DNA from: Oopsacas minuta
Taxonomy: Eukaryota; Animalia; Porifera
Length of the DNA: 64,000 bases
NCBI GenBank assembly: GCA_024704765.1
Contig: JAKMXF010000329.1
Coordinates: 124,001 to 188,000 of the forward strand
Reading direction: 5' to 3'
The notes beneath the pieces were generated by a model. That model was not told the origin of the DNA. It made no database searches and worked only from the letters and a program-made list of their open reading frames with translations. The position numbers and the translations under genes were made by a program. This document shows, piece after piece, positions 7,404-48,249 of this stretch; position 1 is the stretch's first letter, and every line of letters starts with the position of its first letter.

Positions 7404-8029
7404 TAGTAGTGGCCATGGATGACCAATATTCAACTATAACTTACATTATGTTATGACTAAATTCACTTCCAAACATTTAGTATATACCCGACCTCCCATA
7501 TACTGATAATACATTTGAAATGATATCTCTGACGATTATTACGAATCTTGAAAATGACCACATATGGTGATACCTGGAATAGTCCTTTGGAGCGTGAACT
7601 ATGCACAGTGGCTTAAAATGGGAGTAAGTAAAGAATGGGTATTTCATTTGAAATAGACATATATAAAGTATTATCAGCATATAAGTTATCATATGCTAGG
7701 AATCATTTGATGCATTCAAATTTTATAAGGTTTCTATATCTTATGTTCTGACGTCATAGCTTTATGCTGAATTTTGTTTTTCTTTAATATCTGATTGTAA
7801 AACAATCTTAGCCTATACATTTTATTATTTGGGTATAGTATATCATATCCATGGAAGCAATTAGAACTGTTAGAAATACAAAATTACTCATAATTTTATA
7901 AAATTACGTCATACACATGTTTTTCATAATTTTTGCTTTTGTACTCCATACTTCTAAATGCGTTTATAGAATTTATTACTATCACTTTTGCTAATATATG
8001 TGTAACAATTCTAACAATTTCTGGATAAA

Positions 8030-8667
8030 AACAATAAGCAATTATATTAAGGGATGTATTTGTAATATTCATTCACTAACATTCTGCAAACTACTTTGTG
8101 ACAATATCATATCAACAATAAGGCCCTTAACGATATTATCAATAGATGATTCCAATAAATCTGCTGCATTAATTCTACAGCACTTAGCTCTTCGGGTAAA
8201 TGTTTCCATTGATGGGATAACCTTGCAAAATTTAATCACGATCTTTCAGTTCTTTCTGCGTGCAGTACATAGTTAGCAACTTGCACCTCCTGTTCCTGAG
8301 AGAATACTTGCCATTTTACCATCAAGCATTGATCGGACAACATCGACAAATATATGTTTATCATCGGCAAAATAGAAACCTTGGTCCTTCATTTGATCTG
8401 TTTCGGGATTGATGATATCTTTCATAAATTGGCGAATATTGTCATGATTTTCTGTGGCAGCAAGAAGGGAAATTGGATCTTGGGGGAATGGAGAATTCGG
8501 CAGTTGTGATTTGGTAGACGTATTCGTATTCGGTTGATTATATACGGTATGCGTTCCAGATCCATCTAAACCATCAGCAATCTGAAATCGGAGAGGAAAA
8601 TCCTCATTTGAAGGGGACGGTAGAGTGGACATAATTCTACAAAATGTATGGTATACTAATTGAGTGT

Positions 8668-8708
<41 letters not shown>

Positions 8709-9440
8709 AACTGGGGCTGTAGGATTTGGGTACAGTTGAATCATACTTCGTAGTACTAAATTATTTCTATGATCGGCCACCCTTTGATATGTAGGAAAGT
8801 GAATTTCATTAGATAACAAAAGTTGTCGTAGTAGAGTATACTTCCTCTTGCCAATCTCTAATTGATCCAAAAGAAATAATGTCTTGCCCACACCCAATTC
8901 TTTGCTTTGGATTCACGCTCGAATTGACCAGAGAATTTTCCTTGGCAATTGATTAAGATACCCTGGCAACTTCTCGATTGTCTTCTTCATTGCACAACAA
9001 TTGTAAAGCAAGAACTGCAATTGTAATTTCAGAAGTTTTTTCGATTACCGAGATGGACCTGATAGACTCAAGGAAACTAGAGATATGGGAACGCTGATGT
9101 TGCAGTGAAAGATTGATAAGTTCTTTCTTTTGGCGCACCGACTTAGTTTTTGGGGGCTTGTGAAGCTATAAATAATTCTGAGCAAATTTCAGAATGCCAC
9201 CAATCTCCATGCAAAGATGCAAGTGAATTTTTTGAAGTTCTAATCATATCTCGTATTCTACGTAGAATCAATTCAAGTTTAGGCTGTCGGCATGGTCTAA
9301 TCAATGGAGATTGGTAAGATAACCGAGAGTTATTTGGACGTAATCGCTATTTGCTTTCAGGATTCTCGCTAAATCGAGACGAGATTCGAGGAAAGTTATC
9401 GAAGCAATTGGTTCAGCCATTGATCACGGATAAATTATCC
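8030..9440 (-). pseudogene. Transib transposase pseudogene (NBD-like region through the second catalytic Asp and the CxxC region; C-terminal part lost)
   Basis: LFLLDQLEIGKRKYTLLR, LRFQIADGLDGSGTH and VRSMLDGKMASILSGTGGASC align with the intact 713-aa ORF. KKELINLSLQHQRSH resembles the NBD. Confidence 0.88.
8671..8706. repeat. (CA)18 microsatellite inside the Transib pseudogene
   Basis: Read directly from the sequence. Confidence 0.95.
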
Positions 9441-10849
9441 ATGGGGGTGAAAATAAAGGTGTGTGATTGAAAACATAAGTACACGTATATACACACATCT
9501 ATATGTTTAATTTGGTGCAGTAATTCCCAAGAATAATTAGGATTAGACGAGTATTCAATTACTTAGTTACAGATATCACTTTAGGAATTTCCATAGCAAC
9601 GATTACAGACAATGGAATGCGACCAAAAAATCAAAGTTGCGCACCATTTCGGGGCCTGTCATCTTCATATAACATAGCATAAATTGTAAACAACAACTGG
9701 TATTATTTTCGCTTTGACGTTCCTTGACTTTTTCTTTTCAGACACTTTTAAAATTTTATGTATGGAAAAATGAGATTCATTTTTTACCCTGAGTACAACA
9801 ACCCTTCATATGAAAAGTACCCAGTTTAGAATATATCTGATACAAAATTTGAAATCAGCAAGCAAAATTGTCTAGAATAGATGAAACAATAGATCTTTAA
9901 TATATCCTTTAAAGAATCAGAATCTATGGAAGAATCTTTTATATTTTGAATTCTCCGAAAGGATAATTTCAGCATCAAAAACACAAAGTTTCGGTTCAAA
10001 TTTACATAACTAATAGGCTCCCAAATGATTCGAAAATTGGAATGGATGCTACTTGAATGTTTAGAAACACAATGAAACCATAAGGGAATGAAAGCATTAC
10101 TATAAAAAATTTCTTGATTCTTTACTACTAAGCCACTGTGTTATGTAGTATAAGGCTAGAAACTATAATGATTTTCTGGACGAGTGATAAAACTAGTGTA
10201 TTGTAGTTACTATTTTCAAATTTGAGAAAAATGACGTTTGTGATCAAAACAACGAATTATTGTTTTCTTAGGTCATAGGCCAAACGCCATGAAATATTTG
10301 AAAATATTGATGTGGAACGAAAAATACATAGGAAATAGGTGTCAAAAATTATAATTGTAAATTCATTAGCTAAGCTGGCGGAATTAAATACCTAATATAG
10401 TGAGAAATACGATGGTTAATAATTGAAAATGAGTATTTTTAGGAGACGCCATTAGCAATTGCAGAATTTACGGCAAAATGCTTTTATAACCAAACAATTC
10501 AAGAACAACATTGGCTACAATCACAACTCAAAAGGCCAGAAAAAAACGCAATAAAAGTGACTCAACTCAACTTTTTGAGCAATGCAGACTAACGACGTGC
10601 AACGCGGGCGATTAATCCTAAATAATATTTTGGGCTTATTGAACACTGCGAGCTTTCCAAAATTCTAATGTGACTAGAATCGGAAATCAGAAACATGCAC
10701 GTGCAAAAAACTAATCTCTCACCGAAGACATACCCAAGTAATTGTGAAGAGTTCCAATCCGATTTAGGGATAGGGATTCCACACTTCATATTCTACATAT
10801 GTGAGATTTCATCAGTAGATTGTTATCCCAAATATAAAAAGATTTAGAA

Positions 10850-14771: not shown

Positions 14772-16066
14772 GGACTGTTTTGTCATGAACAATTCGTTAT
14801 GGACATTTATGTATGGATAATTTGGTACGCAGACATTTTCTTACGTTGACATTTCAATATGGGACAGTTCGGTTTGTAGACATTTCGGTACGTTGACATT
14901 TCTGTTCAAAATTAATTTGGATTGTAAAAGAATCACACAAATTCATATCTAAAACCATTCGGGAATTACGCAACGCAATTGCACGATTTCTTTCTTCTTC
15001 ACACATTTCTTTTTCTTTTACACCTCTATTCATCACTAATGACAATCTAAGTTGACTAATTATTATTCACTAGGTTTATTAATGAATAATTCTTTTTTGA
15101 ATTAATACCCTTCTGGCCCCAATTTTAATGCATAGATAGGATTTGTATTAAGTCGAGTTGATAAATATGAATTCTCTATATTACAAACAGTTTCTCTAGT
15201 CCCCTAGTGGTTCAGAATTCGCGACACTAACATATATTATTCAATATCATTATGAATTGTATAAACCCATTAATTAATCAACTCTTCAAAAAGAATAATG
15301 TATAATTTGAGAAAGAATTATTCATGAATTATTCATTATTTTGAAGATATTTCAATGAATTAGTCAACACTAGATGACAATTAACAACATTAATCATTGG
15401 TGAAGTATAACAATTATACTATGATTTCAGATACATACCTGATTCAAGATCAGAGTATTTCGAAGGTGTTTGAGGAATTGCCAATTCCCGATGCACAAGG
15501 ATTGGTACTATATTTTGAACGCTTCTACATAGGACGTATACTCCCTGTTTGTACCCAACCAGAGCCCATCTTTCCAATAGAGATGTGGAGTCATCACCAC
15601 GAAGTTCCTCAGTGAATTCCCAGGACTACTAACTCAGTAGAGGCTTGGCATCACTCATAAAATGCTACCTTCGGATGTTATCATGTCAACATTTGGCGTT
15701 TCATCAATGCATTGAAGCGAGAGGCAATCCACGTATATACACCAAGGATAGTTTGTGAAAGTGTCCGGAGATCAGACTTTTAAGCGAACGGATTAAAAGT
15801 CTGGTCTCCGAAATTTCAGAGACTATCCTTGGAATATATACGTGGAGTGGCACATAGAATTGGCCTAAAGGAGACATAATTTTAGTGCTTACTCTCATCA
15901 TTACTTATCATTTTTGTTTCAATATTTCTCAATTAATCATTAATCTAGCAGTAACAGTAAAATTTATGAGTTTCTACTTTACGTCTTAATAACGTACCGA
16001 ATTGTCCACGTCCCGAATTATCCGTACCGTAATGTCGTACCGAATTGTCCACATACCGAACACTCC
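14772..16066 (+). mobile_element. Degenerate MULE derivative
   Basis: Inverted subterminal arrays of GGACA[A/T]TTCGGTACG-like units (14772-14900 and 15990-16066) flank the remnant YFERFYIGR...FPIEMW...PRTTNSVEAWH (15400-15720). No TSD was recognised. Confidence 0.7.
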
Positions 16067-16450
16067 TTGTCCAATATTTGCTATAAGTAGGATTTACATT
16101 TTATTATCATTTGGGAAGTAATTTTCCACAACACTGAGGGTCAAACTTTCTCACTTTATAAAGAGCTCGGCATGGTCGAGCCTATCTCAAAACCATGGCA
16201 AGGCCACAGGGTGCAGCCATCAAATGACCAAAATGACTGCTTCATGACCAAGGAATATTCGATATTACTCTATTATACCCGATCACGGCAGAAGTTTTCC
16301 TTTCGTAATAAAAAGGAACACTAAAAATTTCTACTTCGCTTTAACTATTCTCGCATAAAACACGAGATTTTGGCACCTTTTTGACATCATATTCGCAAAT
16401 TTTCCTTGCAATATTCAGTAACAAGTACACTTTGGCCGAATTCATATTTA

Positions 16451-17158
16451 CACAGTTGGCAAAATGGTGATTGTGCTGTAATAGGTACTTACACTGAGAT
16501 ATATGTTGAGATGGTGTTACATACAGTAAATCGACTCTGTAGATTTAAAAAATGGTACCAGAATTTTAGTTACACTTCTAGAAATGGGACTATGACGTAA
16601 TCTGTGGCATTTTGATTTAATTAATAATTATGGTTCAAGAGTAATTGAGTTCTAAATTTTTGAGTAATTTATATCAATCAGCCCTATATATTGATAAACT
16701 TGAATAACAATGCGTTATACTGAATTCAATTCTGCATTGGATACTTCATACAATGATACTAATAATTTAGAAATACAGTAATTATAAATTGTTATAACGG
16801 GATTCAAATTTTTCTAAATACAAATTTCATGCTAATCGGAGAGTCCCACACACTCGATGCCAAACAAGTACAAGTGGGCACCTTTGGGCGGGTTTAGAAA
16901 TTTTTGAGAATGAAATATCGAAAGATATACTATGCGAAATTGTCGACTATTCAATTCACAATTATTTGTATTGTAAGATCGGGGACTTAAAATGTACTTC
17001 AAAGAGCTAAAACTTTGATTAGATTTGTTATATGTTCATTAAGTAACTAATAATAGCATATTTCTAGGTTTGAAATAGTGTAGAATTGAATGCACATATT
17101 CATTTTGGTGAATAGCGAAGTCAGATTTTCACCTATTACAGCATAATTCCGCACTGTG
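16451..17158 (-). mobile_element. Transib-derived MITE (708 bp)
   Basis: Ends CACAGT-TGGCAAAATGG... and ...GCACTGTG, with a shared inner motif TGCTGTAATAGGT. The interior near 16520-16600 resembles the 3' region of the intact element. Flanks are ATTTA/GTTTA once the adjacent insertion is removed. Confidence 0.8.
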
Positions 17159-17159
17159 G

Positions 17160-20100
17160 CACAGTGTGGCAATATGGGGAAATAGGCATATTTTAAAAAA
17201 CATATTTCAATGCATTTTTCGAATTCTCCATAGTTCAATTAGTACGAAAATATCATTGGCAGCATTAGAAGCAGTTAGGAATCCTAACTACGCACAACTT
17301 TGTTATGTGTTTCTAATAATAGAAATATATATTTTCAAACCTCAAATTCCTATGCCCTAATGTATGTAATCATATTTGATGTAAATATTAAATATAAGAG
17401 TGAAAAACATCTTCTGATAATAAATCTATATTATAACAACAATTTAATCATTGATAGGTTAGTCTAGATATTCATTTGTACTTTTTTCCGGGTGTCTAGT
17501 TTGGCCCTCCCAAAGTTATAATTTGGAATTTTTTCTCATTGATTGAAGTGTAGCATCTCTTGTTTGACAAAATTTGACAAAACGTTATTAATATATAAGT
17601 AATGTTACTATATTTAGTCAACTATTTAATCACTTTCCAGGCTTGCCAAAAGCTGCCCAAAAATTTATCACGTCATTCATTGTCCGGACCGGACAAAAAT
17701 CCGAAAATATATTTTTCATACGTTTTAAATTTTTTCAGTAAAATTCTATATTTTGCTGGTTATTAGTTATTCCAATACTCTACAATCATATATCATAATG
17801 TTTCTATGTTAAAGTAGCCCTTTTGCGGATCATGTCTGTACTAATCACCAACAATGAGGCATATAGTTTGTATATTTCGAATGGAAGAAGTGTTACAGTC
17901 TCTGTTAGGAAACTTATTGAGAACAACCATTTATCCGAAGAAGAAACTGCTACTCTTCATTTAAAATTTAAATCACTTCTAACATCCAGAGAGGCTTACC
18001 GCAGGAAGGATCTTGAAACATGGGATAATATGATTTTCCACTCTACTCATCTAACAATATCCAATCCAAGAAAGAGAATATCGCTTGATCCTGAATTTTC
18101 TTTAGTCACTGATTCTGAAAATCGAAACTTTTCAGAACAGATTGTAACTGAATCCCGGAAGCATATTCTCGAATGTCACATGAAGACTTCCAGATCGAGA
18201 CTTGGTGTTCTTTTAGAGCATGTGGACTTTTTAGCAGAGAGAGAAAAGATTGAGCCTAAACAACTACTCGCTCTAGCTTTAGAATTAGTCTCAAATAAAT
18301 CCTATGACCGTGATACTTCAGACATGTGCAGAGAAATAATTGATAAGGGATCTTTTAGCGGTGTATTGAACAAAGTACAAATCTCTAAATGTGCTTATAT
18401 ATTGGACAGATTAGAAATTGGGGCGAGTAAATACACGAATCTGAAAAGAATTCTCAAAGGTGATGTTAAGCTTCCTTCCTATAAACTTGTCTCGCAATAT
18501 CGTAGGGAAATAAGCCTAATAAATGAAATGGAAATAGTCAGAGACCCCGAAGCATTGTCAATTGGGACTTGCGTCTCTTATCTTTCCATCCTTAGTCTGA
18601 CCATTCAACGCTTGCTTTCAACATTAGACCCAGTTCCTGATTCACACTACCCACTCAAAATTAAGATATCTGATGGATTGGATGGCTCCGGTTGTCATCA
18701 AACCTATAACCAACAAAGCAACAATTCTGCATTAAGCACAAAAACTTTCATTTTGTTCGGATTCAAAGTAATATCAATTACAGACACACTTGGAAATGAC
18801 GTGTTCTATAACAGCTCACCCAACTCTCCGTTCTGCTTTAGGCCAGTAGCACTGATAGCTCTGAAAGAAGATTATTCTAGTGTAAAGCTTATCATGAATA
18901 CAATAGTCAATCCTCAAACAGACCATATCATACAGGATGGGTTATCTCTTATTGGAGGCCATGCACAGGTCGAGATAGTCCGTTCCCTTTTTGATACCAA
19001 GATGGCAGGATTGCTGGATGGAGCTGGTGGGGCTTCTTGTCATCTGTGTACTGCAACGGATAGCCAAATTAAAAGTTTAGAATGGGCCCATTCTGGTTTC
19101 CCTATTAACAGACTAATTAGCGACGCTCGGCAACTTTTTGAAGAGGTTGATGAAGAAGATTACTTGAAACTCCCATCAAATCAACGTGTTGGTATTACGC
19201 ATCAACCAACTTCTAACATCGATATTATAGCTGCATCTCCTTTGCATGCTTACCTTTGTGTATTCAGGTGGTTCATGCTGTTGATATACCATCTTGATGC
19301 AGGACACAAGGTATGGGCGCCATCAAACTCGAAAGTAAATTTTTCCATGAAACGGGTTCGAGCTATACTCCAGGAAAGATGTAATTTCAGTGTCGATATC
19401 CCTTCAAGCCAGGGCGGCACTTCAACCACTGGTAACATTGCGCGAGACTGCTTTTTAAATAAGAGAGACTTTTTGACGTGGGCCACTTCTTCCATTAATC
19501 CTTCAGATAAAATATCATTAGAGAAGATCCAGACAAATCTATCTGTTTTGTTAAGACTCCTCAACAGTGGTGACTTGATTAACTGTGACAAAATGCAAGA
19601 ATTGTGCAAAGAAACGTACGAATTTATTCTAATTGAGTACCCATGGGCAAGCATCACTCCATCTTTGCACAAGTTACTTGCCCATTCGTTTCAGTTAATA
19701 GGTGCTTATAATAATGGTAAGGGATTACAGAATCTCTCTGAGGAATGTTTAGAATCCTGCAATAAATTTGTAAGGCGGTATCGGGAGAATCTTGCAAGAA
19801 AAAGTTCTTTCACTGATAATGTTAGAGATATTTTAGTCAGGTTGTTATGTTGTAGTGACCCCATCTTAGTACAGAATCGTTTGATGCACGCAAAGAAGAA
19901 AAGAGACGTTGCAAATAGCCTCCAAGAGATATTATATAATAGTATACTATCAGATGATTTATGATAATTAGTATATCCAATAGTCATACATAATTAAGGG
20001 TCTTTAAATTGTACGTTATCAAATAGCAGAATAGAGACCATGACATGCATGTATTATCAACTTTCATAATATCCTCACTAATGAACCACAAGTGTTAAAA

Positions 20101-20270
20101 ATTAGAAAATGTCAGTAATTACGTCATAACTAGGTTTATAGTCGTGCTACTAAATAATCATTGGTATTTTTGAAATCTACAGTGTCGATTTAGTATATGT
20201 AAGTATAATTGTTGCGATAATACAGATTCATTTACCTATTTCCCCATTATGGCCATTTTGCCACACTGTG
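17160..20270 (+). mobile_element. Intact Transib (RAG1-core-like) transposon, copy 1
   Basis: Termini CACAGTG...CACTGTG, perfect 5-bp TSD TGTGG (17155-17159 and 20271-20275), a single long ORF, length 3111 bp. Confidence 0.96.
17832..19964 (+). CDS. Transib transposase (710 aa from the first ATG), homologous to the RAG1 core
   Basis: Catalytic triad contexts are SDGLDG, SLFDTK and SEECLESCNK (RAG1 D600/D708/E962 equivalents). Zn ligands are CHLC and LHKLLAH. Transib motifs SPLHA, GGTSTTGNIAR and RLLCCSDP are present. Confidence 0.95.
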   Translation: MSVLITNNEAYSLYISNGRSVTVSVRKLIENNHLSEEETATLHLKFKSLLTSREAYRRKDLETWDNMIFHSTHLTISNPRKRISLDPEFSLVTDSENRNFSEQIVTESRKHILECHMKTSRSRLGVLLEHVDFLAEREKIEPKQLLALALELVSNKSYDRDTSDMCREIIDKGSFSGVLNKVQISKCAYILDRLEIGASKYTNLKRILKGDVKLPSYKLVSQYRREISLINEMEIVRDPEALSIGTCVSYLSILSLTIQRLLSTLDPVPDSHYPLKIKISDGLDGSGCHQTYNQQSNNSALSTKTFILFGFKVISITDTLGNDVFYNSSPNSPFCFRPVALIALKEDYSSVKLIMNTIVNPQTDHIIQDGLSLIGGHAQVEIVRSLFDTKMAGLLDGAGGASCHLCTATDSQIKSLEWAHSGFPINRLISDARQLFEEVDEEDYLKLPSNQRVGITHQPTSNIDIIAASPLHAYLCVFRWFMLLIYHLDAGHKVWAPSNSKVNFSMKRVRAILQERCNFSVDIPSSQGGTSTTGNIARDCFLNKRDFLTWATSSINPSDKISLEKIQTNLSVLLRLLNSGDLINCDKMQELCKETYEFILIEYPWASITPSLHKLLAHSFQLIGAYNNGKGLQNLSEECLESCNKFVRRYRENLARKSSFTDNVRDILVRLLCCSDPILVQNRLMHAKKKRDVANSLQEILYNSILSDDL

Positions 20271-20465
20271 TGTGGTTTAGCATTTCTACACATAACAATT
20301 TCTTCAAGCTATTTCCTAGTCGAAACATCTTACAGTGGCTCTACACAACAACAGGCTATGGATCTATTTTTTCATGTTTCCAAATTAACTCATATTACAA
20401 TAAGTTTCAGCATGCAACAAATCTAAAAAGCTGAATTTTGACCTAGTTTTTCTTTTAGAAATAAT

Positions 20466-21386
20466 TTGTTTATATTTATGGATTACCATTTGCAGATGAA
20501 TGGTTTGTTTGATTACTACAAGATTTTGTATTTCGTGAAAATTGCTCTTTCTTTTTCTTTACTACGAAGGTTTTGTCACGATGATTTAGAAAAATGTATC
20601 TCACGATACACAACAACATGTTTTGAAAATTATCGGGATTTCCTGACCTTTGTACCATCTTCTAGATTCCATTTGGCGATCGGTTTTGGCCATATCTATG
20701 TACCTGAGTTATCTAATGATCAGATTAAGTTCATACGCCTTATGCGTTCATTTGACCATTTCAATTCTCTTTTCAACTCACACCTTTCTTCTAGTATGTG
20801 TCATAGTGTTAGAAATTCCTCTTTGGGAAATTCCAGTGATGAACTTCATTTACTTACTAGGATTATTTCTAATATTTGTCAGATTGACATTATGATGTTG
20901 TCAAGTAAAGAGATGATCTTATTGGGTAATTCTCTCGAACGTGTATTTTGTAATGTGAATACAATGTCTGTCCCACAGAGAAAAATTTTCCAAGAAATTA
21001 TTGTTCGTAGTATTTTCGTGGTCAACTTTCCTACCCTTTCCCGGTCCAATTTCACGATCTTCAAAATTTTTTTTAGCCTTTCAAGGATTAGTCATATTTC
21101 AGCTATATTTTTCTTTGTATATTCTAAGACTCTATTGAATAAAATATTGACTAGTCTCGTTGAATTGTCCTGTAATACAGACTGCCTCTATCATTTGTTT
21201 ATTATATCAGAGGTTTTTGATCTAAATGAAAACTGTGGTCTCTTAATAGATAAAGATATTAATCTATTTCATGAGCATTTATCATGTGATCATATTTATT
21301 TTACCAATTCTGTCTATTCTAAATTTAGTGTAAATTTTCCTTTATTATCTCTAAAATTTGCTTATCTGGCAAACACTTTTACATGA
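20466..21386 (+). CDS. Uncharacterised 306-codon ORF (possible host exon)
   Basis: Long stop-free frame in AT-rich DNA, rich in Leu/Ile/Phe/Ser. No motif was recognised and there is no ATG-context support. Confidence 0.35.
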   Translation: MFIFMDYHLQMNGLFDYYKILYFVKIALSFSLLRRFCHDDLEKCISRYTTTCFENYRDFLTFVPSSRFHLAIGFGHIYVPELSNDQIKFIRLMRSFDHFNSLFNSHLSSSMCHSVRNSSLGNSSDELHLLTRIISNICQIDIMMLSSKEMILLGNSLERVFCNVNTMSVPQRKIFQEIIVRSIFVVNFPTLSRSNFTIFKIFFSLSRISHISAIFFFVYSKTLLNKILTSLVELSCNTDCLYHLFIISEVFDLNENCGLLIDKDINLFHEHLSCDHIYFTNSVYSKFSVNFPLLSLKFAYLANTFT

Positions 21387-22153
21387 ACCTAAACAGTTGC
21401 AAAAATTCTCTTTCGCAGATAAATTGTACAATTTATGGAATTTCTATCAACTTACTCACAGCTATCCCAGCATTTAAGAACCGTTTTCAGGTGGTGGTTC
21501 ATATAATAGATACCCAGTTACCCACTACACATATATTTAGTCTATTTAATTTATTTACTTAGAGTTATAGACATAGAAGTCCATGTCCTAATATACAAAA
21601 TAATTGTATTGTATTGTTCTTCAAGATACGAGCCTTTGGCTCGTTGCTTTGCGATGAACTCAGCGCATTGTGCCTCGAGGTCTTCAAATGGCAAACGACA
21701 ATTGCGATTTAATAATATTGATGTTGTTTATAATATTCAGACTCAGCATACCCGATTATCCCAATATGGCCGTTGAAGGTATGATTCTACCTCAATTTTG
21801 AAATTTTGTTTACTTTATTTCATAAAAATAACACAAAATTTGCATATGATTAATCTAAAAGCGTGAAAATCGGATTCAGTATGTTCGATATATATAGTGA
21901 AGTTTATTGAATTATATTTAAATACGATAAATACATAGTTATGTGACAATTTCAATATTGCATACCATAAATCCTTTCCTTGACAACGGTCAAACAAATA
22001 ATCATTGAGATTTAATAATTTAGATTCCATAGAATAGGATATATTTTGAGTATCCCACTTTATCAATATCCATCTCCTGCTTTTTGGGTAAAATTCCCAA
22101 ATGCTAGAACGTTACGTATGTATCTATGTTCAAATTGTTGAAATAGCCAATTA

Positions 22154-22781
22154 CACTGTACGACAAATTTTTATTTTGGATAAAGACGAGAATTTGATTA
22201 GGTCCCTATAGTCAATTAGGATCTCCTGATTCCCGAATATGAATTCAGTTTTGCTTAATCTCGCACCAATTCATTAGAATTCAACTCATAAATTGAGAAA
22301 ATGGCATATATTTCCGAAGAATTTCTACTTAAATATGAACTAGTCGTGTAAAACTTGTAAGCAATTTTAATTTCGCGGTTATATTGAATTCATTTATTAC
22401 AAGAAATAGCTCTGTATTGGCTAAACCATTTATTTATATGCTATTTTCCGATATTTTGTGATTTTATCTCGTTTTTGTACGTGTCATTCAAATTTCGTTA
22501 GTAAAATGACCAATTTTTTACTATACTAGCTCTTTCTGGTTTATATTTGCTCTAAATACGATGTAGTTTAATAATCCTCACAGGTTTCACATGACTAGAT
22601 GATATTTCGAATAATAATTTTGCAAATGGTAGTAATTTCCCAATTTTACATGTTGAATTCTATAAAATTGTTGCGTGATCAAGCAAAAATGTATTCATAT
22701 TCGGAATCTGGAGATCCTAATTGACTATAGAGACGAAATCAGATTCACGTTTTTTTCCAAAATGAAAATGGTTGTGCAGTG
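22154..22781. mobile_element. MITE with CACTG termini and ~130-bp TIRs (CMC/EnSpm-like)
   Basis: CACTGTAC...GTGCAGTG with a long imperfect inverted repeat that includes CTATAGTCAATTAGGATCTCC. TTA is duplicated on both sides (22151-22153 and 22782-22784). Confidence 0.75.
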
Positions 22782-22929
22782 TTATCTATAACCGTTTCTG
22801 AGTTATCGCACAGACCATGGATTTCACATATTTTGTTAATATCTAATTGTAAAATGTTTCAGGGATTTATTCACGATAATCTTAACTAACACAGTTCTAT
22901 AGTTCTTTCAGGTATATCATCGTATTCAG

Positions 22930-23435
22930 AAATGGGCCGCATAGCCGGGATATGTAATTGTACACTTAGTTGTATTGAAATACTTATGTTCGGTTAGTGT
23001 ATTTCCAGATTGATCGAAGAAACTGGAGGACCCACATGGCTGACTTTTGGCATACAGAGGTACTTTTGGCCTGGCTTGGATAGTTTCGAGTTTTGGACGA
23101 AAATTCACACCTATAATGAAATCATGACGTCATTGTCACATTTTTAATTTTTAACCACTGCTCAGCCAATATTCATGATAGAAGTGTACAGATTACTAAC
23201 CTAATGCCACGTATGAGCTGCAGTATTACCACAGAAGTCCATTTAATGGAATTTGGATGTACCCGGTATAATACAAAATTAACATATTCACAAAAAATTA
23301 ACCTCGAGGCATTTAGTGCTGAGTATTTTCGTCGGGCAGCCACCAAAAGCATCAAGAAATTTAGCTGTTTAATACTTGAGCTAACCTGAGACCCTAAACT
23401 TTCGTGCAGCGACCTAGCAAGTGAAGAGCGCTAGT
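22930..23435. repeat. Dispersed repeat modules (see 10850-11642)
   Basis: 22930-23190 is the reverse complement of the middle module. 23330-23435 is the GACCTAGCAAG...GCGCTAG end module. Confidence 0.6.
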
Positions 23436-24599
23436 AAGTGGATAATCTACGATTATCGGGTTAGAAGAGAATATTGCCAAGCACGTGCAATCTATTTTCT
23501 ATACCATAATTCAGAAAAATTCGAACTTTAACATCACGATTTTATTTATACTGTACAGAATCGATTTAGATCATTTGGTTCTATCAAAAATTAGTTCATT
23601 GATTAATACAACGCTTTCTACATGCAGATGGATCAATTTTAATACGTACATATTTACCAATAAACCAACATATGACGTCACTGTTGTCTGATCATTTTCA
23701 CAAATGTTGCTGTTGTGCATTTATACATCAATACATTTTCGGATGAAAGGTACTAGTTTCTTTTTATCGGCAAAATATTTAATTTCTCACCTAAGAATTT
23801 CCACTTCCTTTTAGCCTGGTCCAGTGATATTTGCCTCAATGAGCAGCAGCGCTCGACAATATGAAATTCGTGGTGGCTAACTTAGCCACCACCTTGGATA
23901 ATTAAACCATAATACACGATATTTTGGCAGCTTATGGAAAATTATGGTGACCAAAGCCAACAAACTATCGTATTTGTCGAGCACTGGTGAGCAATACTTA
24001 GCTTGATTAGGCTATACCAACTCTCAAAATATAGGTAGAGACTTGCTCTTAATGGCTACAATAGGGTGACAAAGTACACTAAATCCGAATTGCAAATTTC
24101 ACGCTGTTCTTATGAAATCACTACTAATATTCTATGGAACCTTTTTACTAAAATGTCAAAAATTGTACCAATGTAGGTTCGTTCTTGAGTTACTTTTGAC
24201 TCTATGATCACATATTTTAATGAATATTCTATCATAACTCGATAATCTTGAAAGTTATAGCATAGCCTACTATACATAAGGCCTCACAGTAATAATTGAA
24301 ATATGGACCAGGGATGGAGTTCTTGATCTACTGTGAAAATGGTTATTTCTTCTTGTAATGCCAGATATGGTCAAACCTAGACTACTAAACATAAGACTAC
24401 ATATTATTAGAGAGATTGGGACCATGGATTGAATATGGATGGATTTTCCATCATTATATTGTCCAAATATTATTCATCAGGAATGTAATTAGTATTTGAA
24501 TTGTCAATAAGATATATAGAAACTAGAAGAAAATTGCTATTGAGTTAAATTAAAAGTACAAATAGATGAAAAAGAAAATTACTTAAAATTGTCTAAATA

Positions 24600-27436
24600 T
24601 AGGATCTGTTAGCTGTTTTGCCAATGAAAGTTCTAAGAATTAATTATTTCAGCTTTCGTTTCTCAAATTCTTTCGAAGCTACCTTAGAATTGTAATTTTT
24701 CACTTTATTAGCTATTAAACAATTCGCTTCAGTGAATACAAGTTTGCGAAGAATAGATGACCTATTTAAATTGCAAGAGGGGCATTGCTCTCTCCAACAA
24801 CCATCATCAACAGAACACACAAGATCCAATAGAATCTGCCTATATGATCCTTCAACAAAGATCCTCATCCATTCTGCATATCCTTCAATAACAGTGAAAT
24901 TCTTCCATACAGTGATTATGGAATCCAAAACAAGTTCAGAAGGATATTTCAGACCTTCACGATCAGTAAGCTCAAGTAGTCTATACTGAAATCCGGTTGA
25001 TTCATGAATTAGGCAATCTTTATCAATTGTTAATAAATCTTGACATAAGTAACATGGTGGACTTCGTTTCAGGCATTGGTGTGCAGCATATCCGGCAATG
25101 AAAGCTAATGATTGAATTGTTTGGGTATCACACTCAACGCTGGATAGATCAGAAATTGCATTAAGGAAAGGGTCAAAATCAATCTCAGCATCCTAAAATA
25201 GCTTCTCTTCAGGTGAAAAGGACTGAATAAATTCTTGTAATGACTTATTACATGATTCGGGCTGATAGGAAAATAGATTTGAATATTTGAAATTTTCAGA
25301 CAACGTTCAGCTTCTAATATTTGAAGATAAGAAATATGGTAGTTGGCACCTGACATCATGCGATAAAGTCCGAATCCGTGCTCTGATGGGTCAGTTTGTA
25401 TGAAAGAAGTTGGAAGGTACGAATATCCATAAGTTTCTGTTAGATAGTTGGTTATTTGTGGTAAAACAATGCATGCATACCTTAAGCTTCCGAAAGTTTG
25501 TTTGGATAATTTCCCATCTTTCCCAGGAAGAGATTCCCAAGCATCTAACCAATTAACTATACGATCTAAGAAGGAGAAGCGATAGTCGTTAAAACCGAAT
25601 GGTTGGGCGGCTGGATCATTTAAACGAACATGCTTGTATAGAACATTACATTGAACATTTTCCATAAAGAAGAAATAATGCTGAGAAAATCTGAAGTGTT
25701 CGATTTATTAGCCACACAGCGTTGGTCATTTTGAATTATTAGAGCAGTTATTGTAGATTCATGTTTAACTTTAAAACTAGTTTCACTTTCTGACGCTCTA
25801 AACTAGAGGGAAAATATGCTTTAAATGTTAACCGCGGAGCTAGTTTTACCAAGCATTCTTTCTCAGAAGGATATAAGATGCGAACATCGCGGAAAGAAGC
25901 TGAGCACATTCTCAAATGTTAGGAACAATAATCTGTCCGTATACCTTAAAAATTAGGGTATATAAGACTCTTACTCTCTGACTTCAGATTTAACCAGTTA
26001 TTGCGTATTGTCTTTAATATATGAAAGAAATCAGAGGTGAGAAATAGGATTCGATTTGGATTAGAAGGATGGAGAACTTGAGTTTCCAGCTTACCACTTT
26101 TAGAGAAGAGTTTGAATAATTTTACATTGAGAGGATAGTTGTCGTTAGAGATAATAACTACAAATAGCACCAACACTCAAGTATCGTTTGTGTTGAAGGA
26201 GAAGCGCAAGGTAACAGACGAACAATACAAGACCATTTTTTCTGTAGACTAGATACCATAATTGCGAATATAGTTTTGATTGGATCATCTGGTGTCAACT
26301 AGCCCCGTATATCTTACCACCAATGTATGAAATATCCGATTTCACATGAATTTCGTCCATTTGGACAATTACATGTTTTTCAGCATCACAGAAAGAACGG
26401 GTCTCTTATTTGAGGAGAGTAAAATAGTCACTTTTTCAAGGCCAGATGAGGAATATAACTCGACTAGAGTATTTACATGAGGAAGAATTTGACAATGCAT
26501 TTGCTGAAGATATTTATAACAAGCTGGAGAAATCAAATGTCTTTTGAGGGCCAATATTTGTGTTAGTACATTATATCTATGCCTGTTTTGTAACTAGCAT
26601 TGCATGAATTGCAGTCTTGAAAGTTCTGGATAATCGGGTTATTCTAAATCTGATTCATTTATTTGTAAAGTGTTATAACCTGTTGAATATGGTCTGTGGT
26701 TAAAGGAATATGGGTAGCATTTGCCTCAGAAATATAAGATTCACTCGGATGTGTTGATTTAGATGCTTCACCATGTATAGTTTCTATTTGTTGAATATCG
26801 CTATGGAGGTTAGCGAAAGCAAACTAGGTTCTCCATTACAAAAAGCTCTAACAGATAGATTGGAATGTAATATCAAGTACATATTTACAAGGATATCACT
26901 ACTTACAAAACTTAGGCGCATAAAAACAATACTATTTCGCTCAGGATGCCATAATGACCATTTCTTAGACAAGGAAAGCAAGGTAATTTGTATGAAATAT
27001 CGTAAAACTGCTAATTTTGAATTTATCTCTCTCTTCAGCTTCTGATTTCAGGCTAAGTGTCAAAGTTTGGTTGAATAGTTTATCTTCTCATATATTCTAG
27101 GGGACTCCTGCGCATAGTATTAGATTGGTAGTATGATAGACAACCTAGTAGAAACGCTGGTACAGCGCCATCTTTCAGCTTGAGCATGACTCGAGGGATT
27201 TCACAAAAGGTTCCATCTCCGTTTGGAACTTGGTGACTGTATTCTACATCCTCTCCCCGAAAATGTTTAACACAAACATCAACAGACTTCAATTTATCTA
27301 AATCATCCCTCCGAAGAGCCCTAATCCAAGAATGTCTGAGTTAAGGTGGTTTATTACGTAATCTGAATACATGTACAGTTTCGAGAGTAGATTTGTGGTT
27401 ACTTTTGCACCCAGGAGCGGAGCAGTAATTAGGCAT
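24600..27436 (-). pseudogene. THAP-domain P-element transposase pseudogene
   Basis: THAP domain MPNYCSAPGC...W...VCVKHF...LKDGAVP; core MDEIHVKSDISY, SDFFHILKTIRNNW, QTDPSEHGFGLYRMMSGANY and FIAGY. Many stops and frameshifts. Confidence 0.9.
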
Positions 27437-35118: not shown

Positions 35119-36300
35119 ATGAACAACGAAAAAGCATTTTATTATTTTAATAGCAACAAAAACAATAGTATTAGTTCAATCTCTAAGGAATTTGTTGCAG
35201 AATTTGCTCTCAATGCTTCTCAGTGTGATGAAATACATCTAATATTTTCTAAACTGAACCTCGAGAGGAGAGATTTCGCAAGAAACAAGAGCTTGGAGAT
35301 TTGGAATGAGTCGCTCTTTTGCCAACTCCCAAACATACCAGAGGCGATTGTATATCCACGAGAGCAAGAAGTTAGCGTGACCTCATCTATTCAGAGTACA
35401 CTTACCTTCGAAGAAGATGTCAATCGTGTGCCATATAAGCATATTGATAAACTGTCAACCAAGGGCTTAGGTATTCAGTTAGATTCATTAATCTCACTCC
35501 TTAGAACCGATGCTGAGAAAGAACATGTTGCTCCTAAAACCATCGCTTCTTACTTGTTAATGTTGAATTCGCAAAAGAACGCGATTTCTCAAGTTAATTG
35601 TATGTAAGGAGATTATTGCAGCTTATCTTAGATATTTCGCATGGTTTGTAAATCTAGTCACCCACTTGGTTGCAGGAGAGACTGATAAATAGTCCCCTTC
35701 TTCAACCACTGTTTCAGAGTCTAAGGAACTTGTAGTCAGTCTAATAAAAGACAAGCTGAACATACTTATCGAAGTTCCATCTATACAAGGGGGCACATCA
35801 ACTACAGGAAATGTAGCACGGAATTGTTTGAAGAGACTAGACGATAGTGACAAAGATTGTCTCTATTGGATTTTGACAATCATTCCACTTGAATATCATT
35901 CTGCAGTCACTGATATTTATAACAAGCTTGGTGTGATAATACGAGTCTTCGATTGCAGTAGGAGAATTGACACAGAAGAACTAGAAATTGCTTGTAGAGC
36001 AGTTTATCAATCGATTTTAGTAATTTCCCGTGGGCCAAAATTAGTCCGACACTACACAAGCTACTAGCCCATGCTTCAGGTATAATGACAAAGTTTTATG
36101 AATTCGTGGATTAGAGGCTCTATCGGAAGAAGGCATTGAGGCTTGTAGATACAAGTTCGCAGATATAGCGAATGTCTCTTACGAAAATTTAGTTATGAAG
36201 AGAATATTCGTGACACCTTCATACGGCTGATTTCTCAGAGTCATCCCATATTACTGCTGAACAGAAAATCCCAGAAAAGCAGTCAAACAACTCAACAAGT
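35119..36300 (+). pseudogene. Transib transposase pseudogene lacking the RNase H segment with both catalytic Asp residues
   Basis: The NBD-like YKHIDKLSTKGL...AEKEHVAPK jumps directly to AYLRYFAWF...IQGGTSTTGNVARNC, followed by LSEEGIEAC and NIRDTFIRLISQSHP. Confidence 0.88.
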
Positions 36301-45139: not shown

Positions 45140-48100
45140 CACAGTGTGGCAAAATGGCCATAATGGGGAAATAGGTAAATGAATCTGTATTATCGCCACA
45201 ATTATACTTACATATACTAAATCGACACTGTAGATTTCAAAAATACCAATGATTATTTAGTAGCACGACTATAAACCTAGTTATGACGTAATTACTGACA
45301 TTTTCTAATTTTTAACACTTGTGGTTCATTAGTGAGGATATTATGAAAGTTGATAATACATGCATGCCATGGTCTCTATTCTGCTATTTGATAACGTACA
45401 ATATAAAGACCCTGAATTATGTATGACTATTGAGTATACTTATTATCATAAATCATCTGATAGTATACTATTATATAATATCTCTTGGAGGCTATTTGCA
45501 AAGTCTCTTTTCTTCTTTGCGTGCATCAAACGATTCTGTACTAAGATGGGGTCACTACAACATAACAACCTGACTAAAATATCTCTAACATTATCTGTGA
45601 AAGAAGTTTTTCTTGCAAGATTCTCCCGATACCGCCTTACAAATTTATTGCAGGATTCTAAACATTCCTCAGAGAGATTCTGTAATCCCTTACCATTATT
45701 GTAAGCACCTATTAACTGAAACGAATGGGCAAGTAACTTGTGCAAAGATAGAGTGATGCTTGCCCATGGGTACTCAACTAGAATAAATTCGTACGTTTCT
45801 TTGCACAATTCTTGCATTTTGTCACAGTTAATCAAGTCACCACTGTTGAGGAGTCTTAACAAAACAGATAGATTTGTCTGGATCTTCTCTAATGATATTT
45901 TATCTGAAGGATTAATGGAAGAAGTGGGCCACGTCAAAAAGTCTCTCTTATTTAAAAAGCAGTCTCGCGCAATGTTACCAGTGGTTGAAGTGCCGCTCTG
46001 GCTTGAAGGGATATCGACACTGAAATTACATCTTTCCTGGAGTATAGCTCGAACCCGTTTCATGGATGAATTTACTTTCGAGTTTGATGGCGCCCATACC
46101 TTGTGTCCTGTATCAAGATCGTATATCAACAGCATGAACCACCTGAATACACAAAGGTAAGCATGCAAAGGAGACGCAGCTATAATATCGATGTTAGAAG
46201 TTGGTTGATGCGTAATACCAACACGTTGATTTGATGGGAGTTTCAAGTAATCTTCTTCATCAACCACTTCAAAAAGTTGCCGAGCGTCGCTAATTAATCT
46301 GTTAATAGGGAAACCAGAATGGGCCCATTCTAAACTTTTAATTTGGCTATCCGTTGCAGTACACAGATGACAAGAAGCCCCACCAGCTCCATCCAGCAAT
46401 CCTGCCATCTTGGTATCAAAAAGGGAACGGACTATCTCGACCTGTGCATGGCCTCCAATAAGAGATAACCCATCCTGTATGATATGGTCTGTTTGAGGAT
46501 TGACTATTGTATTCATGATAAACTTTACACTAGAATAATCTTCTTTCAAAGCTATCAGTGCTACTGGCCTGAAGCAAAACGGAGAGTTGGGTGAGCTGTT
46601 ATAGAACACGTCATTTCCAAGTGTGTCTGTAATTGATATTACTTTGAATCCGAACAAAATGAAAGTTTTTGTGCTTAATACAGAATTGTTGCTTTGTTGG
46701 TTATAGGTTTGATGACAACCGGAGCCATCCAATCCATCAGATATCTTAATTTTGAGTGGGTTGTGTGAATCAGGAACTGGGTCTAATGTTGAAAGCAAGC
46801 GTTGAATGGTCAGACTAAGGATGGAATGATAAGAGACGCAAGTCGCAATTGACAATGCTTCGGGGTCTCTAACTATTTCCATTTCATTTATTAGGCTTAT
46901 TTCCCTACGATATTGCGAGACAAGCTTATAGGAAGGAAGCTTAACATCACCTTTGAGAATTCTTTTCAGATTCGTGTATTTACTCGCCCCAATTTCTAAG
47001 CTGTCCAATATATAAGCACATTTAGAGATTTGTACTTTGTTCAATACACCGCTAAAAGATCCCTTATCAATTATTTCTCTGCACATGTCTGAAGTATCAC
47101 GGTCATAGGATTTATTTGAGACTAATTCTAAAGCTAGAGCGAGTAGTTGTTTAGGCTCAATCTTTTCTCTCTCTGCTAAAAAGTCCACATGCTCCAAAAG
47201 AACACCAAGTCTCGATCTGGAAGTCTTCATGCGACATTCGAGAGTATCATTCCGGGATTCAGTTACAATCTGTTCTGAAAAGTTTCGATTTTCAGAATCA
47301 GTGACTAAAGAAAATTCAGGATCAAGCGATATTCTCTTTCTTGGATTGGATATTGTTAGATGAGTAGAGTGGAAAATCATATTATCCCATGTTTCAAGAT
47401 CCTTCCTGCGGTAAGCCTCTCTGGATGTTAGAAGTGATTTAAATTTTAAATGGAGAGTAGCAGTTTCTTCTTCGGATAAATGGTTGTTCTCAATAAGTTT
47501 CCTAACAGAGACTGTAACACTTCTTCCATTCGAAATATACAAATTATATGCCTCATTGTTCGTGATTAGTACAGACATGATCCGCAAAAGGGCTACTTTA
47601 ACATAGAAACATTATGATATATGATTGTAGAGTATTGGAATAACTAATAACCAGCAAAATATAGAATTTTACTGAAAAAATTTAAAACGTATGAAAAATA
47701 TATTTTTCGGATTTTGTCCGGTCCGGACAATAAATGACGTGATAAATTTTTGGGCAGCTTTTGGCAAGCCTGGAAAGTGATTAAATAATTGACTAAATAT
47801 AGTAACATTACGTATATATTAATAACGTTTTGTCAAATTTTGTCAAACAAGAGATGCTACACTTCAATCAATAAAAAAAATTCCAAATTATAACTTTGGG
47901 AGGGCCAAACTAGACACCCGGAAAAAAGTACAAATGAATATCTAGACTAACCTATCAATGATTAAATTGTTGTTACAATATAGATTTATTATCAGAAGAT
48001 GTTTTTCAGTCTTATATTTAGTATTTACATCAAATATGATTACATACATTAGGACATGAGAATTTGCGGTTTGAAAATATATATTTCTATTATTAGAAAC

Positions 48101-48249
48101 ACATAACAAAGTTGTGCGTAGTTAGGATTCCTAACTGCTTCTAATGCTGCCAATGATATTTTCGTACTAATTGAACTATGGAGAATTCGAAAAATGCATT
48201 GAAATATGTTTTTTCAAATATGCCTATTTCCCCATATTGCCACACTGTG
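45140..48249 (-). mobile_element. Intact Transib transposon, copy 2 (inverted relative to copy 1)
   Basis: Same termini as copy 1, perfect 5-bp TSD GTATT (45135-45139 and 48250-48254), length 3110 bp. Confidence 0.96.
45446..47578 (-). CDS. Transib transposase, copy 2 (710 aa)
   Basis: Open frame with 21 amino-acid differences from copy 1 by manual count (about 97% identity). DDE and Zn ligands are retained. Confidence 0.95.
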   Translation of the reverse strand: MSVLITNNEAYNLYISNGRSVTVSVRKLIENNHLSEEETATLHLKFKSLLTSREAYRRKDLETWDNMIFHSTHLTISNPRKRISLDPEFSLVTDSENRNFSEQIVTESRNDTLECRMKTSRSRLGVLLEHVDFLAEREKIEPKQLLALALELVSNKSYDRDTSDMCREIIDKGSFSGVLNKVQISKCAYILDSLEIGASKYTNLKRILKGDVKLPSYKLVSQYRREISLINEMEIVRDPEALSIATCVSYHSILSLTIQRLLSTLDPVPDSHNPLKIKISDGLDGSGCHQTYNQQSNNSVLSTKTFILFGFKVISITDTLGNDVFYNSSPNSPFCFRPVALIALKEDYSSVKFIMNTIVNPQTDHIIQDGLSLIGGHAQVEIVRSLFDTKMAGLLDGAGGASCHLCTATDSQIKSLEWAHSGFPINRLISDARQLFEVVDEEDYLKLPSNQRVGITHQPTSNIDIIAASPLHAYLCVFRWFMLLIYDLDTGHKVWAPSNSKVNSSMKRVRAILQERCNFSVDIPSSQSGTSTTGNIARDCFLNKRDFLTWPTSSINPSDKISLEKIQTNLSVLLRLLNSGDLINCDKMQELCKETYEFILVEYPWASITLSLHKLLAHSFQLIGAYNNGKGLQNLSEECLESCNKFVRRYRENLARKTSFTDNVRDILVRLLCCSDPILVQNRLMHAKKKRDFANSLQEILYNSILSDDL

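Follow-up and report, generated by a model that had tools for sequence, protein, structure and literature searches.

We describe a Transib DNA transposon from the glass sponge Oopsacas minuta whose two ends differ in a regular way. It lies at 17160-20270 of the window, which is the whole stretch of DNA that we analyzed: 64,000 nucleotides at positions 124,001 to 188,000 (forward strand) of contig JAKMXF010000329.1, assembly GCA_024704765.1. Each end of this 3111-bp element starts with the heptamer CACAGTG and has an inner, nonamer-like box, GGAAATAGG, which is separated from the heptamer by 11 bp at the 5' end and by 20 bp at the 3' end. The same two spacings, in the same orientation, recur in five divergent families, and the transposase contains a homologue of the nonamer-binding domain (NBD) of RAG1. 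The explanation that we lean toward, with limited confidence, is that this is a young Transib with selected 11/20 ends and an NBD dimer that favors the pairing of a short end with a long end. As a pairing rule, this interpretation is plausible but unproven.

The boundaries of the element were read directly from the sequence. The 5' terminus at 17160 reads CACAGTG-TGGCAATA-TGGGGAAATAGG, and the 3' terminus, as the reverse complement from 20270, reads CACAGTG-TGGCAAAATGGCCATAA-TGGGGAAATAGG. An earlier, sequence-only reading of the window had reported CACAGTG ends with a second motif after 8 and 17 bp; direct reading agrees, and the same spacers come to 11 and 20 bp if the count runs to the core GGAAATAGG. 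Whichever frame is chosen for the box, the two ends are offset by 9 bp. Counted from the cut sites, the first base of the GGAAATAGG box is number 19 at the short end and number 28 at the long end (that is, 7 + 11 and 7 + 20 bp precede it). In the window family, the long end consists of three phased 9-mers (GCAAAATGG, CCATAATGG, and GGAAATAGG) and the short end of two. The 13-mer CACAGTGTGGCAA occurs exactly four times in the window, at the four ends of two copies of the element; if up to two mismatches are allowed, there are six matches and 0.84 would be expected, so the match of these ends exceeds chance.

The element contains one gene, a single-exon open reading frame (ORF) of 710 amino acids from its ATG (713 if counted from an upstream TTG). 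Just 672 bp lie 5' of the ORF and 306 bp lie 3' of it, so the element has no room for a RAG2-like gene, and we found no second sense ORF of at least 80 amino acids within the 3111 bp. These features of the Transib superfamily are present: a DDE transposase that resembles the RAG1 core, a target site duplication (TSD) of 5 bp, termini with a CAC heptamer, and no internal RAG2-like gene. The element is an autonomous Transib, a DNA transposon of the cut-and-paste kind. The sequence-only reading had stated that the ORF, the DDE triad, the zinc ligands, and the TSD were intact and that there was no space for RAG2L, and it was right on each of these.

To compare the ends across greater distances, we considered six families: that of the window element (family A), those of loci L009, L010/L011, L013, and L014, and that of another element in the window, at 7604-10140. 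All are from sponge or sponge-associated assemblies (L013 and L014 are from ENA assemblies). The transposases of the five further families are about 37-45% identical to the window transposase (local BLASTP). We located the ends of the relatives by a terminal match plus a TSD, which is GGGCC for L009, GGTAT for L013, and CTTCG for L014. In all six families, 11 bp lie between the heptamer and a GGAAATAGG-like box on the 5' side of the transposase, and 20 bp lie between them on the 3' side; L014 has a 1-bp deletion within its 5' inner box. For instance, in the element at 7604-10140, which is a decayed copy with its transposase on the minus strand, the end on the 5' side of the transposase (at 10140) reads CACAGTG GCTTA GTAGTAAAGAAT, which is the short type. 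The end on the 3' side (at 7604) reads CACAGTG GCTTA AAATGGGAG TAAGTAAAGAAT, with 9 extra bp that contain AAATGG. The decayed ORF of this element is interrupted at 8637-8710 by a (GT)n/(AC)n microsatellite, which shows up as VCVCVCVC in the translations of two minus-strand ORFs that overlap.

While the spacings are constant, most of the bases in them are not. Across the six families, pairwise identity is 100% in the heptamer, 59-76% in the inner box, 53% in the 3' spacer, and 34% in the 5' spacer, which is about random. Within each family, the two ends are identical at 18-26 of 27 positions once a single 9-bp gap is allowed. The higher conservation of the long spacer is due to one motif, AAA(T)GG, which occupies positions 13-18 as counted inward from the 3' terminus: AAA is found in all six families, T in four, the first G in all six, and the second G in five. 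This box is absent from the short ends. The short ends of four families have a run of A about 22 bp from the heptamer. The sequence-only reading had described the long end by the distance to its second motif: that length is indeed fixed, but the spacer is not neutral, since it carries the 3'-specific AAA(T)GG. Because the length difference, its orientation, and the motif in the extra 9 bp were held while the neighboring bases drifted, the unequal ends are very probably selected for function, rather than the result of a neutral indel.

Other relatives were too incomplete to add to this comparison. For L012 (protein P0002), we did not locate a convincing 5' end, and a lone long-type match may be due to chance. 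The more distant relatives were drawn from a search of 1.84 billion proteins, which gave 2257 matches at E ≤ 1e-3; two of these, P0075 (27% identity) and P0095 (30% identity), are encoded on short contigs (2.7 and 3.4 kb), neither of which reaches the 3' end. The TARA metagenome scaffold that encodes P0095 (L016) has a long-type end upstream of the gene, at 357-410: CACAGTG, 20 bp with AAAACGG, and then GGAATTTAAGG. If this is a true 5' end, then the short/long orientation is reversed there; the contig stops before the 3' terminus. The window also contains a fourth Transib-related relic, at 35597-36265 on the plus strand, whose translation is 31% identical to residues 465-683 of the transposase (tblastn). 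We found no recognizable ends or TSD for this relic.

We then considered what kind of enzyme the ORF encodes. Using phmmer, the transposase matched the HzTransib structure (6pqn) with E = 1.4e-26 and matched BbRAG1L of amphioxus with E = 1.6e-4; its score for the RAG1 family of Pfam was slightly below the cutoff. Because of this difference in E values, the transposase is, by sequence, a Transib and not a RAG1L. The sequence-only reading had proposed a candidate intermediate between Transib and ProtoRAG/RAG. We rejected this proposal: despite an NBD and a ZnB length that are like those of RAG1, HzTransib is far nearer than BbRAG1L is.

The active site appears to be complete. The catalytic residues D284, D388, and E637 are intact in alignments to HzTransib and BbRAG1L and in an alignment of 13 sequences of the family; D284 is the second D in DGLDGSG and aligns with the aspartate of GFDGAS in HzTransib. 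The zinc ligands C403, C406, H613, and H618 are all intact as well in these alignments. We also built an AlphaFold model from the 13-sequence alignment (pLDDT of 76.8). In this model, residues 179-687 superpose on residues 459-1007 of mouse RAG1, and residues 179-710 superpose on residues 21-500 of HzTransib, with Z of about 29 (29.4) in each case. The sponge protein has 207 residues from C406 to H613, as compared to 165 from C227 to H392 in HzTransib (42 more, counted from the sequence alignment). The extra ZnB segment is an insert at residues 418-465 that is absent from HzTransib; it was delimited from the sequence alignment. The spacing in the sponge protein equals that from C730 to H937 of RAG1, which we take to be 207 residues.

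Just N-terminal to this core is the region that resembles the NBD. A profile of residues 106-182, built from nine members of the family, matched the crystal structure of the RAG1 NBD bound to DNA (3GNA) with E = 3.1e-5, and it was aligned to residues 393-438 of RAG1. The best 16 matches of this profile were all RAG1. When we modeled residues 106-182 separately (pLDDT of 89.7), the best structural matches were again the NBDs of RAG1 (for 3gna_A, TM scores of 0.71 and 0.79 and a root mean square deviation of 2.2 Å over 66 columns). The Foldseek E values were weak, as expected for a helical domain of 77 residues. By sequence and by predicted fold, then, residues 106-182 are a homologue of the NBD of RAG1. 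They have no counterpart in HzTransib, whose alignment to the core begins at residue 179. The GGRPR motif with which the RAG1 NBD contacts the minor groove is not kept: the window protein has SRKH at this point, and most of its relatives have (T/Q/A)RKP.

Residues 1-70 form a conserved N-terminal domain, for which we found no homologue in PDB or Pfam. At the C terminus, the CCGHC zinc knuckle (CTT1) is absent from the window protein. A knuckle of the form CxxCGxxxHxxxxC, which is the CCGHC/CTT1 motif known from RAG1L proteins, is found at the C terminus of the sister transposases P0002, P0003, P0004, and P0009 (around columns 717-733 of the alignment, with weak matches to zf-CCHC); the window family and several others have lost it. 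The 11/20 ends are kept both with the knuckle (L014) and without it (the window family, L009, L010, and L013). Thus, loss of the knuckle does not alter the geometry of the ends. The features of the element and its relatives in the window are listed in the table.

Table. Features of the Transib element and of related elements in the window.
Feature	Positions	Strand	Basis
Left copy of TSD, TGTGG	17155..17159		identical TGTGG at 20271-20275
Short (5') end, made up of the heptamer CACAGTG (17160-17166), the spacer TGGCAATATGG of 11 bp (17167-17177), and the nonamer-like inner box GGAAATAGG (17178-17186)	17160..17186	+	
Intact single-exon transposase ORF, 710 amino acids	17832..19964	+	match to HzTransib; Pfam RAG1 (weak); model, Z 29.4
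NBD homologue, residues 106-182, directly N-terminal to the segment alignable to HzTransib and to the core of RAG1	18147..18377	+	profile match; domain model
Predicted RAG1-core-like catalytic body, residues 179-687, with D284/D388/E637 and C403/C406/H613/H618	18366..19892	+	alignments; model
Long (3') end, made up of the heptamer (20264-20270), a spacer of 20 bp (20244-20263), and the inner box GGAAATAGG (20235-20243)	20235..20270	-	
3'-end-specific box AAATGG, positions 13-18 from the terminus, within the extra 9 bp	20253..20258	-	comparison of six families
Right copy of TSD, TGTGG	20271..20275		identical TGTGG at 17155-17159
Second full copy, inverted, 3110 bp, 98.3% identical, intact 710-residue ORF, TSD AATAC (GTATT on the + strand), same short and long ends	45140..48249	-	
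Decayed element from another Transib family, with CACAGTGGCTTA ends and a (GT)n run that disrupts its ORF	7604..10140	-	

The family has spread recently. A protein cluster at 90% identity has 33 annotated members, all of them from O. minuta (GCA_024704765.1). We checked nine elements of the window family, namely the two copies in the window and seven at other loci. All nine have one short end and one long end, and their flanks differ at every copy. Eight of the nine have a perfect 5-bp TSD of their own; in L007, the flanks match at just three of five positions. Eight copies retain both termini intact; they measure 3110-3112 bp, are 98.2-99.9% identical, and each carry the uninterrupted 710-residue ORF. 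The ninth, L004, has a mutated 5' heptamer (CGCAGTG) and encodes the same protein. These nine copies are too young to count as independent evidence for the asymmetry.

The public sequencing runs of O. minuta also indicate a family with many copies. In Logan contigs from these runs, the summed word depth is around 15,000-25,000 over the element, as compared to 30-47 on the unique right flank; word depth is not copy number, and we used it only as a sign of a high-copy family with sharp termini. In these assemblies of public reads, many unrelated flanks abut the element, with their boundaries precisely at 17159/17160 and at 20270. We saw no joint across an empty site in these runs, which are not labeled as either DNA or RNA. 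Given the different 5-bp TSDs at its copies, the element is mobile; the sequence-only reading had rightly called it a single-gene Transib. It is young and probably still active.

Several other observations bear on where the family inserts and where it is found. Within 1 bp of the element, head to head with it, is the tip of another Transib-type end (17123-17166): on the minus strand from 17158, we see CACAGTG, 11 bp, TGTAATAGG, TG, and AAAA, an arrangement of the short type. Because the last four bases of this older heptamer lie within the TSD TGTGG, the element inserted right at the end of one of its relatives. We found no partner for the older end within 7 kb. The left flank of the element is itself repeated, with a word depth of 1000-2300, versus 30-47 for the right flank. 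Across the copies in the window and at loci L001-L011, L013, and L014, the TSDs are mostly not GC-rich (TGTGG, AATAC, TAGAG, AAGTA, CTTTA, CATTA, ATTAG, GGCCG, GGGCC, GGTAT, and CTTCG), although this is a small sample; in contrast, the Transibs of insects and RAG prefer GC-rich targets (PMC1131882). Finally, when we compared 16900-20500 to runs that are labeled as two other organisms, we found copies of the family that are mostly 90-99% alike, that also end at 20270 on the 3' side, and that have one flank in common. Therefore, the family exists outside of the individual that was assembled. These copies could be from a related sponge, from the same species under another label, or from horizontal transfer.

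That Transib ends can be unequal was already known, so the asymmetry that the sequence-only reading put forward is real and conserved but not a new idea. Kapitonov and Jurka (2005) described several Transib families with an RSS12-like 5' end and an RSS23-like 3' end (RSS, recombination signal sequence) and concluded that the 12/23 rule could be derived from the ends of Transibs (PMC1131882). Yakovenko et al. (2021) built a hypothesis on the asymmetric ends of Transibs and proposed a functional role for them (PMC8355894). Tao et al. (2022) divided Transibs into two subgroups, both with an equivalent of the NBD, and reported that all members of Subgroup I have asymmetric terminal inverted repeats (TIRs) and represent intermediates toward RAG1L (PMC9435367). 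Martin et al. (2023) noted that asymmetric TIRs, the CCGHC motif, and the NBD are all known from Transibs, and they described an asymmetry of 10 bp in PflRAGL-A (PMC10462144).

The sponge element fits a kind that has been described, and by its features, rather than by phylogeny, it is most like Subgroup I. It shares with that subgroup a RAG1-like transposase without RAG2L, a 5-bp TSD, a CAC heptamer, asymmetric TIRs, an NBD-equivalent region, and possibly, as the spacing of its zinc ligands suggests, the ZnB region (helices alpha11-alpha12) that was lost by HzTransib-type (Subgroup II) elements (PMC9435367). It differs in its host and in that its nearest solved structure by sequence is HzTransib, and it lacks the CCGHC tail (CTT1) of Subgroup I, which is present in the sister families P0002, P0003, P0004, and P0009. 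HzTransib, from Helicoverpa zea (6pqn and others), is the closest relative with a structure and has the same DDE residues and zinc ligands, but it has no counterpart of the NBD, its ZnB is 42 residues shorter between the CxxC and HxxxxH ligands, and its TIRs are described as symmetric (PMC8289069). In Transib5, Transib2_AG, and TransibN1-3_AG (Fig. 4C of PMC1131882), the short end is on the 5' side, as in the sponge element. However, those insect elements have a spacing of about 12/23 and an A-rich nonamer, while the sponge element has 11/20, GGAAATAGG, and the 3'-specific AAA(T)GG. The ends of AanRAGL from Aureococcus anophagefferens have a 13-bp box that contains the heptamer and a 10-bp inner box, which are 4 or 13 bp apart (PMC9435367). 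The window family can be written in the same way, as CACAGTGTGGCAA, 4 or 13 bp, and GGGAAATAGG, so that both have an offset of 9 bp; but AanRAGL is an element of a protist, its box sequences are different, and it carries RAG2L.

As for the RAG system itself, the sponge element has the exact consensus heptamer of V(D)J RSSs and an inner box at two fixed distances that differ by roughly one helical turn, and, like RAG1-RAG2, it has an enzyme with an NBD (here, the homologue) and makes 5-bp TSDs. In RAG, the NBD is on a flexible hinge and recognizes the nonamer of the RSS, a signal that is bipartite and asymmetric (summarized in PMC7204232). The spacings are not the same, however: 11/20 in the sponge element, 12/23 in RSSs, and 27/31 in ProtoRAG. 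In signals of the 12/23 rule, an A-rich nonamer follows after 12 ± 1 or 23 ± 1 bp; the short end is within this range at 11 bp (12 bp when counted to GAAATAGG), but the long end, with 20-21 bp, is not. The sponge element also lacks the linked RAG2-like gene of RAGL transposons, and its NBD homologue lacks the GRPR motif. The analogy to the 12/23 rule in the sequence-only reading therefore survives in part: a 9-bp asymmetry with the same orientation in six families, along with an NBD homologue, but with spacers of 11 and 20 bp instead of 12 and 23 bp.

Under the explanation that we lean toward, a dimer of the transposase would engage both heptamers and cleave by the nick-hairpin route of RAG and Transib, and its NBD dimer would hold two GGAAATAGG boxes whose distances from the cut sites differ by about one helical turn. 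Complexes that join a short end to a long end would be favored over short/short or long/long ones because a dimeric NBD could not sit symmetrically on boxes at different distances, and the element would need no RAG2-like partner of its own. A RAG-like reading of the two unequally spaced inner boxes is plausible because the homologue of the RAG1 NBD is present, and in geometry the short end is close to a 12-RSS, with the long end falling 2-3 bp short of a 23-RSS. ProtoRAG offers an experimental precedent, as it prefers the asymmetric 5'/3' pair over symmetric pairs (Tao et al., 2020; PMC8289069). The sponge enzyme may have a measurable preference for the short/long pair, although we would not quite count on it. 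We doubt that there is a strict short/long rule that a single protein would enforce by means of an NBD dimer reading boxes at 11 and 20 bp.

Several points weigh against the explanation by pairing. The offset is 9 bp, or 0.86 of a helical turn, and not 11 bp; the inner box, GGAAATAGG, is not the A-rich nonamer of RSSs; and, with SRKH (or RKP in relatives) in place of GRPR, it is assumed that the domain reads DNA. Carmona et al. (2016; PMC4840297) found that RAG1 is no longer bound by the 12/23 requirement when RAG2 is absent, and the RAGL enzymes of invertebrates were argued to be relatively insensitive to the asymmetry of their TIRs (Martin et al., 2020). A partner protein may act in trans from elsewhere in the genome. 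The six families share one ancestor, so their common orientation and offset could partly be inheritance; inheritance alone is less likely because the conservation of spacer length amid the divergence of the spacers argues for constraint. Also, with the 3'-specific AAA(T)GG, the ends are unlike in what they contain, and this could account for the asymmetry even if there is no rule of pairing.

This last point leads to an account in which the ends are functionally differentiated, but not for pairing. The extra 9-bp module with AAA(T)GG would be a separate, putative binding site, recognized by the domain at residues 1-70, by another part of the transposase, or by a host factor. Symmetric pairs would still work, perhaps less well or differently, and the ends would be non-equivalent in, for example, the order of cleavage, the strength of binding, or the orientation of the complex. 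Differentiation of left and right ends is known in the P element, piggyBac, and Tn7-type elements. In the sponge families, AAA(T)GG is more conserved than most of the nonamer is, the 5' ends have a motif of their own (the run of A), and the domain at residues 1-70 is conserved but has no known homologue, all of which would fit. So would the finding that A-rich TR2 boxes that adjoin the heptamer are binding elements in the TIRs of RAGL (PMC10462144). However, such differentiation leaves unexplained why the distances between heptamer and nonamer are exactly 11 and 20 in every family. We consider it possible but somewhat unlikely as the explanation for the asymmetry; it overlaps with short/long pairing by an NBD dimer, and both may be true. 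Another account is that the ancestor of these families happened to duplicate (or delete) 9 bp in tandem and that the difference was inherited without any mechanistic role. The three phased 9-mers at the long end, versus two at the short end, do look like the duplication of a unit, and all of the families have a common ancestor. But the families differ at 55-63% of protein positions and their 5' spacers are nearly random with respect to each other, yet the 9-bp difference has the same size and place in every one of them, and the motif within is nearly invariant. Neutral sequence would not persist in this way, so we think that a historical accident is very improbable. Least probable of all is that the element is inactive and that its copies arose solely by segmental duplication or from redundancy in the assembly. 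The lack of an empty-site allele in the public read assemblies is what such an element would predict, but this account is contradicted by the distinct TSDs and different flanks of the copies, by the many distinct flanks that abut the exact termini, and by copies that are up to 99.9% identical with intact ORFs.

Overall, the core idea, that the 12/23 rule might originate from the asymmetric ends of Transibs, was already in the literature; what is new is the sponge host and a well-preserved family. We found no mention of sponges in Tao et al. (2022; text and the supplements that we searched, PMC9435367) or in Martin et al. (2020), and we found no paper that describes Transib in Porifera in the literature that we searched, although absence there is not proof. 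The origin of the 12/23 rule is debated: it has been attributed to a contribution from RAG2 (Carmona et al., 2016) or to inheritance from asymmetric transposon ends (Kapitonov & Jurka, 2005; Tao et al., 2020, 2022; Martin et al., 2023). If a single protein does impose a pairing rule on the ends of the sponge element, then a restriction of the 12/23 type would predate RAG2 and would already have been present in transposases at the Transib stage, contrary to the view that RAG2 established it. To our knowledge, HzTransib is the only Transib enzyme that has been characterized, and we know of no single-protein Transib with both asymmetric ends and an NBD that has been tested biochemically. The window family would be a good experimental model: its enzyme is compact (710 residues), intact, and very recently mobile, its ends differ by essentially one 9-bp module, and the five other families provide natural variants as comparative controls. 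The family places asymmetric-ended Transibs with an NBD homologue in Porifera.

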